64,000 nucleotides of DNA from Macrostomum lignano. Its lineage: Eukaryota. This document shows positions 9,093 to 12,621 of the stretch, piece after piece. Made by a program: the position numbers and the translations under genes. The notes beneath the pieces were generated by a model. The model ran no database searches, was not told the DNA's origin, and saw only the letters and a program-made list of their open reading frames with translations. The stretch is from contig NIVC01002152.1 of NCBI GenBank assembly GCA_002269645.1, forward strand, positions 124,001 through 188,000. The letters run 5' to 3'. Numbering within the stretch: position 1 is the first letter of the stretch; each line of letters begins with the position of its first letter.

Positions 9093-12000
9093 TCAAATCT
9101 CGATAAGCAGGCGCACCTCTTTGAGCAGTGTCCAACTCTTTGCCTTGGCCTTATTGGTGCAATCCGACGCCAGGGTTCTGTTCAGCCCCATCAGCGACTG
9201 CATCATTGCTTGTCTTCGCGGATCTCCAAAGTCGCTATAGTGAAAGACGCCGTTAGGATTGAAGTCAACCGAGCCCGCAGTCGCCTCACTGTACCACCAC
9301 CAGCCCGCGAAACCCAGCGACTGCATAGTCCGTCTTTGGTAGTTGTACCTGCGTCCGTGGCTACGTCCTGAGTATAATCGCATTCGAAACTCCTGGGACA
9401 TTTTGTCCCTAGTAGAGAAGGGCAGGCCTCGACTGCGAGCTAGCAGATCGTCTGTGTTCGACTGCTGTCTCATGTAGGCATCGTAGGTGAGATTGTAGCT
9501 GTAAAGTGCAATCGGGATTGAACTTTCGTTTGTGAAGTTTCTGATTTGTGTATTTTCTAGTTCGGTTTGTGAACCTTCCGGTTGGTGAAGTTTTTAATCT
9601 GTCAAGATTCACAGAAATTTCTTGCTCGTAAAGCACCCGCCTCTAACTGTGTACCCATCTCTGCACAGCACATGTACATGTATGTGTTAAGTTTGCCGAC
9701 CTCGGTCCAAGCAGCCTCAGGCCTGAGTACTCCGCGTACAGCAAAGTGCCGTTCCACAGCCGGGCCTCTATACGCAGCAGCGAACCGGTGGGATGGGTGA
9801 AGGCAGAAATGCTGCGAAGACCTGTTAGAAGTCGATGGTTTGCAGAGAGCGATGGTCAAGTGAATTGCTCGTTTCATTCACTGATCCCATGCTGGTCCCA
9901 TAGCGATCCCAAACTAAGCCTCACATATTTGTGACACTCAATCTCACGCCTATTTTTCACCAGTCCCACACCAATCCCAACCCAGTCCCATTCCAATGCC
10001 ACACCAATCCCAACCCAGTCCCACACCAATCCCACACCAGTCCCACACCATTTCCAACCCAGTCCCACACCAGTCCCACACCAATCCCACACCAGTCCCA
10101 CACCATTTCCAACCCAGTCCCACACCAGTCCCACACCAATGCCACACCAATCCCAACCCAGTCCCACACCATTTCCAACCCAGTCCCACACCAATGCCAC
10201 ACCAATCCCAACCCAGTCCCACACCATTTCCAACCCAGTCCCACACCAGTCCCACACCAATGCCACACCAATCCCAACCCAGTCCCACACCAATCCCACA
10301 CCAATCCAGAAGTTGCGGGTGTTGCCGAATCCCTGCTCATAGTCGGACCAGTCCCGGCTAAAATTCACGCCTGGTGAGCTGCGCTTCTGCACCAATAAGA
10401 AGCTTCGCCCGTCTTCCAGGCGTTCAATCTGACAGGCGCCGGTGGCGTTGCTCTCGCCGCATGTCGGAGACGGCGGTCCAGACGCCGCAGGCGAAGCTGG
10501 AGGCGGCCGGGTAAGCGGCAAGGAGAGGCGACGCTTTGCGACCTCGAGCCGGCATATTTTGGCGTCGAACTTGGGGCGCCAGGCGATGCGAGAGAACAGG
10601 ACTAACGGGTCCGCCTGCACAGCCGAACTGCGGGTAGTAGTAGTAGTAGTAGTACCACTAGTAGTAGCAGTAGCAGTACCAGTGGTAGTAGTAGTAGTAG
10701 TAGTAGTAGTAGTAGTAGTAGTACCACTAGTAGTAGCAGTAGCAGTAGTAGTAGTAGTAGTAGTAGTAGTAGTAGTAGTAGTAGTAGTAGTAGTAGTAGT
10801 AGTAGTAGTAGTAGTAGTAGTAGTAGTAGTAGTAGTAGTAGTAGTAGTAGTAGTAGTAGTAGTAGTAGTAGTAGTAGTAGTAGTAGTACTCACCGCAGCC
10901 GGGAGCAGTTGTAGTAGCTGCCGCAGGCTATTCTGAGCAGCAGGTCTGATTCGTCGGCAGCAATTAGCACCTGCGGCCGTCCAAAACTGTCCGAGCCACT
11001 CGGCCACTGCCGCACTGACAGTCGCGGATCCAGCAGCCGCATGAAGGCCACAGCCGGCTCGCCATCCGACATGCCGTTCTTTGTCAGCCAGGCTATCGCA
11101 GCCGAGAGTGCTTCATCGCTGTGCAGTTGCACCTGCAGCTGCAGGTAGTTCAGCTGCCGGTTGAAGTCACGCCGGATGAGGGCCTCACCCAGGTAGCAGA
11201 GCAGCGGCTCCAGGTAGAATGCCTTGGTGCCATTGACTTCCGACTGGTGCAGCCGGAGGCTGCAGTTGCCGCCGCCAATTGGAGTTTCGAATGTCGGCAG
11301 CGCGGTGACATTCAGGCACGGTGCCAGCTGGCCAGCGGATAGCGGGAGGCCTCGGACAGGTCGATAGGAGCTGTGCTGCAGCGCGATTGGCCTGCCTTGA
11401 CCTTGACTGATGGCGTCGGACTTCAGTAGGCGGCGAGAGCAGGGGTGCAGCAGCTCAGCTTCAACAGACACCGGCTCCAGAGCCTCCGCAGCTTTTGAGT
11501 CGCCTGCAGCTCGGATTATCTGGCTGAAATCGAAAGTTCAACAGGCTGAAGGATATAAATTTACATGTAGTTCCCGCACAGCCTTACCAACTGCTTGCAA
11601 TTCACTCGCAGAAGCCAAGGCTCAAGGGTGAAAGCTGAGAGGCCAAGGCTCAAGGGGGGATGCTGAGAAGCCAAGGCTCAAGGGGGGAATGCTGAGAGGC
11701 TAAGGCTCAATGGGGGAATGCTGAGAGGCTAAGGCTCAATGGGGGAATGCTGAGAGGCTAAGGCTCAATGGGGGAATGCTGAGAGGCTAAGGCTCAATGG
11801 GGGAATGCTGAGAGGCTAAGGCTCAATGAGGGAATGCTGAGAGGCTAAGGCTCAATGAGGGAATGCTGAGAGGCTAAGGCTCAATGGGGGAATGCTGAGA
11901 GGCTAAGGCTCAATGGGGGAATGCTGAGAGGCTAAGGCTCAATGAGGGAATGCGCCCCATTCAATTAATTCCTGTCTTCTATCTAGCTAATAAAGTGTGC

Positions 12001-12621
12001 AGTGAAAACTGGCCTCCAGTCCAGTGTCGTTCTAATTTAGTTGTCCTTGACCGCACCCACATTTTAACTCTAAGAGCCGATGAAAACGTACACCAGCAAG
12101 GAGCAGCCGATGCCATCGCAGCTGAGCTTCAACAGGCCGACGGTCTGATCCGACTGGCTCCATACGAAATCGCGCGCCACAAACTGCGCCGGCTGATGCG
12201 AGCTGACGGCCACACCGCCGGCCAGTTCCAGATAGTCGGCGGACACCACAGGCCCGCTGCCGCTGCGGGCAGTCAGCTGACGGACTGCCTCATCTAGCAG
12301 AGTCCGATTGGCCAGCATCACCGGCACATTCACGTACGAGTAGCCGCCAACCGGGTCCTCCAATACGTCGACAGAAGCCGCGTCGCTGTAGAAGTCGCTG
12401 CGAGACGGTTGAACTGCTGCAGGCACGCAGAAGGCCGGCTCAGCCCACAGGCGGCTGCTGTCCGAGGCGGCCTGCCACAGAGTCAGCTGGCAGCCGTGGG
12501 CCATCACTGTGCGCGGATTGGTCAGGCTATCGTCGTCCAGGTGGCTGCACGACGTTGCAGTTTCTGCCACCACCAGGGCGGCGGAACAGATCAGCAGCGC
12601 CAGTGCCGCCTTCGGTAGCAT
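9093..12621 (-). CDS. Secreted 670-aa protein: signal peptide, two tandem copies of an unrecognised six-Cys domain, Pro-rich linker, C-terminal fibrinogen-related domain (FReD)
   Basis: Exons 12621-12092, 11523-10894, 10627-10302, 9821-9701, 9498-9093 total 2013 nt. All introns are GT-AG, with phases 2,2,1,2 consistent. Signal peptide MLPKAALALLICSAALVVA. FReD motifs: VQKRSSPGVNFSRDWSDYEQGFGNTRNFWIGL, LLRIEARLWNGTLLYAEY, LARSRGLPFSTRD, GWWWY, NPNG, LKEVRLLI*. Donors of introns 3 (GTGTGG) and 4 (GTCGGC) are weak. Confidence 0.85.
9957..10305. repeat. 11-bp-based composite minisatellite (CCAATCCCACA / CCAGTCCCACA variants) in intron 3 of the FReD gene
   Basis: Direct inspection; source of the VWDWCG and PHQSHT ORFs. 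Confidence 0.9.
10634..10888. repeat. (TAG)n/(CTA)n microsatellite forming almost all of intron 2 of the FReD gene
   Basis: Near-perfect trinucleotide run between the GTGAGT donor (10893) and the CGCAG acceptor (10628) on the minus strand. Confidence 0.95.
11610..11952. repeat. 29-bp minisatellite (CTGAGAGGCTAAGGCTCAATGGGGGAATG) in intron 1 of the FReD gene
   Basis: About 11 copies, period 29. Confidence 0.9.

Follow-up and report, generated by a model that had tools for sequence, protein, structure and literature searches.

We describe here a gene of the flatworm Macrostomum lignano whose product has an undescribed six-cysteine module, in two tandem copies, ahead of a C-terminal fibrinogen-related domain. 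The gene is located on the minus strand, at positions 9093-12621 of a 64,000-nucleotide stretch of contig NIVC01002152.1 (assembly GCA_002269645.1, positions 124,001 to 188,000 of the forward strand), which we denote the window and to which all coordinates below refer. The module has no match in Pfam or the PDB, and it recurs in sister genes of the same animal, joined either to a fibrinogen-related domain or to a C-type lectin domain. The reading that we favor, as a reasonably probable one, is that the product is a secreted extracellular binding or recognition protein consisting of two disulfide-braced modules and a fibrinogen head, and that the module is an exon-duplicated building block of a family with two kinds of heads.

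Gene structure and transcript support

A protein of 670 amino acids (aa) is encoded by a 2013-nt open reading frame (ORF) that results from joining five exons, whose borders follow the GT-AG rule and whose phases agree with each other. The composition of the window is of the eukaryotic type, with exons of high third-position GC and AT-richer introns filled with minisatellites. The elements of the gene and its product are as follows.

12092-12621, minus strand: exon 1, with the ATG at 12619-12621, the signal peptide and module 1 up to four residues past its fifth cysteine (Cys5+4); donor GTACGT, phase 2
10894-11523, minus strand: exon 2, 630 nt, symmetric (phase 2-2), which completes module 1 (C205 lies here) and covers module 2 as far as Cys5+4; donor GTGAGT
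10302-10627, minus strand: exon 3, which completes module 2 (C412 lies here) and continues through a linker rich in Pro, Ala and Ser into the fibrinogen-related domain, as far as NFWI[G]
9701-9821, minus strand: exon 4, coding for the central portion of the fibrinogen-related domain (LRSISAF...LLGP)
9093-9498, minus strand: exon 5, coding for the end of the fibrinogen-related domain and closed by the stop codon TGA (9093-9095)
12565-12621, minus strand: signal peptide (aa 1-19), within exon 1
11439-12549, minus strand: module 1 (aa C25-C205), split by intron 1 (11524-12091); delineated by an independent profile, cysteine columns and the order of secondary structure elements in the AlphaFold model
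10552-11318, minus strand: module 2 (aa C246-C412), split by intron 2 (10628-10893); delineated by an independent profile and the AlphaFold model
9096-10434, minus strand: fibrinogen-related domain (about aa 452-670), split by introns 3 and 4; delineated by Pfam, PDB relatives and paralogue alignment, with a degenerate P-domain
12691-12693, minus strand: upstream in-frame ATG of the GenBank annotation, adding 24 aa (MHRSNPSEENLSLRLVQHTREPHR); probably not the true start

The product starts with a signal-peptide-like segment, MLPKAALALLICSAALVVA/ET, so that the hydrophobic N-terminal stretch, read directly from the sequence, ends at VVA/E; the C-terminus lacks a transmembrane-like stretch. In the coding sequence, GC at third codon positions amounts to 0.74 (N-terminal part) and 0.68 (C-terminal part); confident neighboring genes show values of 0.67-0.74.

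The preliminary description of this DNA had placed two modules and a fibrinogen domain in five exons, an architecture that the 670-aa splice model bears out, and had considered the gene to be missed by the ORF track. In the databases it is not missed: PAA60443.1 (BOX15_Mlig003017g1, Mlig003017.g1), whose locus in GCA_002269645.1 (NIVC01002152.1) is the window sequence, is identical to the 670-aa model over its entire length (100 %) and carries the 24 additional N-terminal residues. The gene therefore already has entries in GenBank and UniProt, labeled hypothetical or 'Fibrinogen C-terminal domain-containing', and what is new is the N-terminal module part of ~410 aa, which is unannotated. The annotation of M. 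lignano was built from RNA-seq, using StringTie/TACO, trans-splice and poly(A) data, and TransDecoder (PMC5730564). Because PAA60443.1 is identical to our model and the annotation was RNA-seq-guided, the joining of exons 1 and 2 to the fibrinogen-domain exons is backed by transcripts, and the window gene is a real, transcribed gene of M. lignano.

As for the start codon, comparison with the family suggests that translation probably begins at the ATG at 12621 rather than at 12693, because all paralogues begin directly with the signal-peptide-like segment, without such an extension, and because with the upstream ATG the hydrophobic signal segment would become internal. Two other readings of the sequence were tried and rejected. 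An exon 4 frame starting with MKRAIHLTIA was dropped, as the frame LRSISAF...LLRIEARLWNG fits both the fibrinogen-domain consensus and the splice phases. The (GTA)85 tract of intron 2 was considered as a poly-Thr mucin linker and was discarded as well, given that retention of this intron in the exon 2 frame leads to an immediate TGA.

Evidence for a tandem repeat

The cysteines of the 670-aa protein are at positions 25, 44, 65, 168, 173, 205, 246, 264, 286, 377, 383 and 412; the numbering given in the preliminary description is exact, and the region 10550-12550 that it delineated runs from the codon of C25 to that of C412. The similarity between the two halves is not significant in direct comparison (Smith-Waterman z 1.5, with 84 of the 1000 shuffles scoring as high; blastp E 0.3). 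For this reason, the repeat was not accepted on pairwise comparison and profile evidence was required first. This evidence was supplied by a hidden Markov model (HMM) built from 11 modules of two other family proteins (P0002 and P0004), which matches aa 36-180, corresponding to module 1, with 35.7 bits (E 3e-13) and aa 251-407, corresponding to module 2, with 74.2 bits (E 5e-25). The significance of the internal repeat thus holds at the level of profiles and fails in direct comparison of the halves.

In the alignment of 22 modules of the family, cysteines 1-5 of both halves occupy the same family columns. C412 fills the sixth column; the equivalent region of module 1 has C205 as its sole cysteine, shifted out of register by an insertion. 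Both modules conform to the six-cysteine pattern of the family. Of the four sequence blocks that had been listed as shared between the halves, three are aligned by the HMM; the fourth, RSDFY versus RRDFN, is probably not homologous, with RRDFN pairing with VLEDPV and RSDFY falling in a low-confidence insertion. Both modules of the window protein contain the Glu-Pro that precedes Cys3 and is invariant in the family.

The gene structure shows the same periodicity. A phase-2 intron interrupts both halves at the identical aligned residue, Cys5+4 (GCSLL[V]Q and NCSRL[R]S). Both modules of the paralogue P0003 have this intron as well, the one in module 1 at Cys5+3, and so does each of the six modules of P0013. 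In the first module of the P0013 gene (L004 1539/2108), the module-boundary intron has a GC-AG splice pair; all other module introns examined are GT-AG. The repeated unit is hence a symmetric 2-2 exon of about 190-210 codons and, for that reason, can be duplicated in tandem without breaking the frame. The modules, of ~170-190 aa each, tile the entire stretch from the signal peptide to the C-terminal domain, and in the AlphaFold model of the two-module segment (predicted local distance difference test (pLDDT) 76.4, predicted template modeling score (pTM) 0.72), strands and helices follow each other in the same order in both halves. Collectively, the profile matches, the cysteine columns together with the Glu-Pro, the shared intron and the order of secondary structure elements establish the internal repeat.

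Cysteines 2 and 3 are both present in 16 of the 22 modules and both absent in the remaining 6; cysteines 4 and 5 are both present in 18 and both absent in 4, and module 1 of P0003 lacks both Cys1 and Cys6. From this co-occurrence, we infer three disulfides per module, namely, Cys1-Cys6, Cys2-Cys3 and Cys4-Cys5.

Second genomic copy and purifying selection

Between the window copy and a second copy of the gene in the M. lignano genome (NIVC01000087.1; P0001), 18 codons differ synonymously and 6 nonsynonymously. The ratio of nonsynonymous to synonymous differences per site (pN/pS) is 0.11 for the whole coding sequence (P 5e-7), 0.18 for the modules (P 0.004) and 0.06 for the fibrinogen domain (P 3e-5). 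The two genomic copies are under purifying selection, and the gene is not a decaying duplicate. The exons of the two copies are 97.5-100 % identical (mostly above 98 %), whereas the introns are 568, 266, 480 and 202 nt long in the window and roughly 360, 890, 560 and 1070 nt long in the second copy, because the copy numbers of the same minisatellites differ. The repeat-filled state of the introns, already pointed out in the preliminary description, is due to the following tracts (no strand assigned).

11610-11953: 29-bp minisatellite, 11.9 copies, in intron 1 (4.9 copies in the second gene copy)
10634-10888: (GTA)85 microsatellite filling intron 2 ((TAC)293 in the second gene copy)
9958-10307: 22/33-bp minisatellite, 16 copies, filling intron 3 (19.4 copies in the second gene copy)

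The repeat tracts of the second copy (locus L002) are at 6741-6879, 7601-8479, 8806-9232 and 9628-10526, and a 16-bp unit repeated 56 times is found only in its intron 4.

These data bear on the possibility that the gene is a decaying duplicate, that is, a pseudogene in the making, and that a chance pattern of cysteines was mistaken for a repeat. The recent polyploidy of M. lignano, with its many redundant gene copies (PMC5730564), the lack of significant similarity between the halves in pairwise comparison and the degenerate P-domain of the fibrinogen domain would all fit this view. Nevertheless, the independent profile matches to each half, the intron position and phase shared by the halves, the ORF that is intact in both copies with a low pN/pS, and the transcript-based gene model effectively refute this explanation, and we assign it a negligible probability.

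Family, domain architectures and taxonomic range

In the 670-aa protein, Pfam detects Fibrinogen_C (PF00147) only, at aa 452-625 (E 6.4e-18; 65.8 bits versus a curated gathering cut-off of 22). Among PDB sequences, 67 fibrinogen domains are matched at E<=1e-3, the closest solved relatives being ficolin-3 (E 3.9e-12), the fibrinogen gamma chain, ficolin-2 and angiopoietin-1 (E 4e-12 to 4e-10). The phase-1 intron at FWI[G]L within this domain is common to the window gene and the paralogue P0003.

When 1.84 billion representative proteins were searched exhaustively with phmmer, using aa 20-412 as the query, seven proteins were retrieved, six of which are from M. lignano and the seventh from the Logan assembly of SRR30276812. 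The module recurs in two architectures. Two modules followed by a fibrinogen domain are encoded at five loci: Mlig003017/015530 (at least two genomic copies), Mlig010465 (PAA87967.1), Mlig009643 (PAA89839.1), Mlig024225 (PAA70694.1) and Mlig027058 (PAA89661.1). Six modules followed by a C-type lectin domain (Lectin_C) are encoded by Mlig001890, Mlig001546 and Mlig001894; the accessions of the C-type lectin members are PAA78696.1, PAA72931.1 and PAA78245.1. In their annotations, all these paralogues go no further than a hypothetical protein or a mention of the fibrinogen or C-type lectin domain. The paralogues share with the window gene the module itself and the position and phase of the module intron. 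In PAA89661.1 (P0006), the last ~90 aa, after 'VVGPPAPATR', no longer align with the fibrinogen domain, apparently because of a frameshift or mis-splicing in the annotation, or because the copy is degenerate.

The protein from SRR30276812, an independent RNA-seq assembly, consists of six modules and a Lectin_C domain and is 49 % identical to its M. lignano counterpart over 1449 aa. The sequence represents a transcript because the 4758-nt contig is intronless. The family is therefore conserved, and also expressed, in one or more additional organisms. The identity between species (49 %) can be compared with 20-28 % between modules. A protein search with the fibrinogen domain of a paralogue yielded 6 matches, mostly fragments from M. 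lignano. As far as could be searched, the module family appears to be restricted to Macrostomum. A loose resemblance to expanded invertebrate C1q and fibrinogen-related domain families, which had been mentioned in the preliminary description, was not recovered: the exhaustive search gave only Macrostomum proteins and the one transcript.

Module fold and comparison with known domains

AlphaFold, run on an alignment of 19 modules, produced a confident alpha+beta model of module 2 (pLDDT 84.1, pTM 0.81) that features two long helices. As had been noticed from the sequence, the module matches no recognized family: Pfam gave nothing consistent at E<=10 in any of the 19 modules, the module profile had zero matches to PDB sequences at E<=10, and Foldseek searches of the PDB with the one-module and two-module models yielded no match at E<=1e-3 (TM 0.05-0.25). 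A phmmer search of PDB sequences seeded with the N-terminal part returned a chlorophyll-binding protein (E 0.27) and glycoprotein gB of human cytomegalovirus, through 'GCQLTFWEA' (E 0.7); both were judged to be chance matches.

When the model was compared with predicted viral structures in the BFVD, Foldseek returned a single significant neighbor, the uncharacterized 417-aa protein A0A7S7YF07 of Medusavirus stheno T3 (E 1.8e-4, probability 1.00). The two predicted structures superimpose over 184 aligned columns with a TM of 0.53, normalized to the module, a root mean square deviation of 5.2 A and 15 % identity. The viral protein is about as long as two modules; it is missed by sequence search, and it has no annotation. 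Both sides of the comparison are predictions, and homology would be putative. This match suggests that the module fold might not be strictly flatworm-specific; it says nothing about function, and it hints at a possible link to giant viruses or amoebae, or else at convergence.

An alternative to a new module would be that it belongs to a known superfamily of extracellular domains but has diverged too far to be recognized by the Pfam HMMs or by Foldseek against the PDB. The protein would then simply combine a fibrinogen domain with a partner domain that is already known. The viral structure is in line with this alternative insofar as the fold is not unique to flatworms. However, the viral neighbor is itself uncharacterized, and neither the 19 modules in Pfam, nor the profile in the PDB, nor Foldseek in the PDB pointed to any known superfamily, so that we consider this explanation unlikely.

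Proposed function

In the scenario that we favor, in which the gene encodes a secreted binding or recognition protein, the tandem pair would have arisen by duplication of the symmetric phase 2-2 exon, and the same exon unit would have been multiplied to six in the sister genes that end in a C-type lectin domain. The module would then be a family-specific building block that carries two different lectin-type heads. The disulfide-braced modules might form a rigid stalk, a second binding or oligomerization surface, or both, and the C-terminal domain would be the head.

Several observations weigh against this reading. In the structures of ficolin, tachylectin-5A and FIBCD1, the calcium site is formed, and the acetyl-group pocket framed, by the acidic FSTxDxDND motif and the Cys...GGWW...Cys segment. 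In the window gene, the calcium motif DxDND is absent, FSTRDKMSQ being followed by an insertion of ~18 aa, whereas the paralogues P0003, P0005 and P0023 retain FSTxDRDND. Likewise, the P-domain disulfide is missing: the window gene has ...SLGFAGWWWYSEA..., with no cysteine on either side, where the same three paralogues have SC....GGWWF..C. The segment AGWWWYSEA of the window gene lacks both cysteines, and WWYASC of ficolin-3 aligns to its WWYSEA. Because the calcium motif and the P-domain cysteines are lost, canonical lectin activity of the window-gene fibrinogen domain appears doubtful, even though the domain is strongly constrained; with the canonical geometry for calcium and acetyl binding gone from this head, the ligand, if any, would likely be non-canonical, or binding might have moved to the modules. 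The role in innate immunity, mucus or adhesion envisaged in the preliminary description would be purely conjectural, and the loss of DxDND and of the P-domain disulfide weakens the canonical lectin version of it. Furthermore, the proposed disulfide pairing was derived from co-loss with few independent loss events, the structure models come from shallow alignments (11-19 rows, essentially two species), and the taxonomic restriction was read from a phmmer search with a single sequence. The gene IDs of the family were not found in the text of the supplements of M. lignano papers, which may use other IDs. A full-text search for Mlig015530 likewise gave no match.

The main rival with respect to function is a lineage-specific secretion of a specialized gland with a structural or reproductive role, for example, of seminal fluid, eggshell or cement, adhesive, or rhabdites and mucus, with the fibrinogen domain as a degenerate structural remnant. 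Such a role would be compatible with the confinement of the family to Macrostomum in the search of 1.84 billion proteins, with the fast divergence of its members, both between species and between modules, and with the lost canonical binding site of the window-gene fibrinogen domain. Adhesive proteins of M. lignano also carry lectin-type domains (PMC6410801). On the other hand, the paralogues retain canonical fibrinogen-domain and C-type lectin motifs, including FSTxDRDND and the Cys...GGWWF..Cys pair that distinguish their fibrinogen domains from that of the window gene, which argues for real binding heads in the family. In addition, the gene IDs are not found in the supplements of the papers on reproduction and positional RNA-seq and on germline and neoblasts, a weak point because other IDs might be in use there. 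On this evidence, we regard a gland secretion as possible, albeit short of probable, and retain the secreted binding or recognition protein as our preferred interpretation.

Genomic neighborhood

The other features recognized in the window are listed below.

2615-6864, plus strand: host-cell-factor-like (HCF) gene (Kelch beta-propeller and fn3 exons), tail-to-tail with the fibrinogen-domain gene
18385-23085, minus strand: TM9SF/EMP70 (nonaspanin) gene, upstream of the fibrinogen-domain gene
25750-26139, minus strand: ORF with a SOCS box (E 3e-10)
40327-41800, minus strand: retrotransposon pol remnant (Integrase_H2C2, rve and an RVT_1 fragment), in an island of 63 % GC
50660-51139 and 54397-54834, minus strand: two protein kinase exons that, by eye, resemble S6 kinase/AGC kinases

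The order of the HCF gene, the fibrinogen-domain gene and EMP70 is annotated identically in GCA_002269645.1. Minisatellites are also found in the introns of the neighboring genes: a 23-bp unit is repeated 59.5 times at 3558-4939 in an intron of the host-cell-factor-like gene, and an array of ~1.5 kb in the kinase intron (52.6-54.1 kb) creates long spurious ORFs in several frames. A tRNA-like repeat, or one resembling a short interspersed nuclear element, with '...ccagctaatgctggcacccattttacagc...ggttcgaatc...' was spotted by eye at least three times, at about 13100-13340 and, as similar stretches, near 8777-8917 and near 26919-27100.

Comparison with known lectin systems and implications

The fibrinogen-related and C-type lectin-related proteins (FREPs and CREPs) of the snail Biomphalaria, collectively the VIgL family, combine one or two N-terminal immunoglobulin superfamily (IgSF) domains with a C-terminal fibrinogen or C-type lectin domain (PMC10075465, PMC7588048). 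The window protein resembles them in having a signal peptide, tandem N-terminal modules of one type and a C-terminal fibrinogen domain, and the resemblance extends to the sister genes with the same type of module and a C-type lectin head, and to the organization as a lineage-restricted multigene family. Unlike in the snail proteins, the module is not an IgSF domain (no Ig match in Pfam at E<=10; two long helices predicted), the Macrostomum C-type lectin members contain six modules rather than one or two, and the fibrinogen domain of the window gene is without the canonical calcium site. Ficolins and collectins are similar in that one type of stalk carries a fibrinogen-type or a C-type lectin head; in the window protein, however, there is neither a Gly-X-Y run in the 670-aa sequence nor a Collagen match in Pfam, and the stalk would consist of globular disulfide-bonded modules. 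Because it has no IgSF domain and no collagen repeat, the window protein is not a member of the snail FREP/CREP or the ficolin/collectin families.

Beyond the secreted binding protein proposed above, we can speculate that Macrostomum has convergently evolved FREP/CREP-like recognition lectins, a counterpart of the snail VIgL and the vertebrate ficolin/collectin systems, on a fold without a solved relative that either originated in this lineage or has counterparts only among proteins of giant viruses or protists, with tandem exon duplication as the way in which the family expanded. We put this wider scenario forward tentatively, as one that is rather less than probable.

Among the known routes by which invertebrates diversify their innate recognition, the principal one relies on fibrinogen-related and C-type lectin proteins whose N-terminal modules are specific to a lineage, as in the snail FREPs and CREPs. 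In free-living flatworms, to our knowledge, molecules of this kind have hardly been characterized. The practical gains from the present analysis are modest. A definition of the new domain would annotate at least eight loci of M. lignano that are now 'hypothetical', and the match to the uncharacterized giant-virus protein may provide a structural link. The family offers a possible starting point for work on humoral recognition or gland secretions in flatworms and, as M. lignano allows transgenesis and RNA interference, its function is directly testable.

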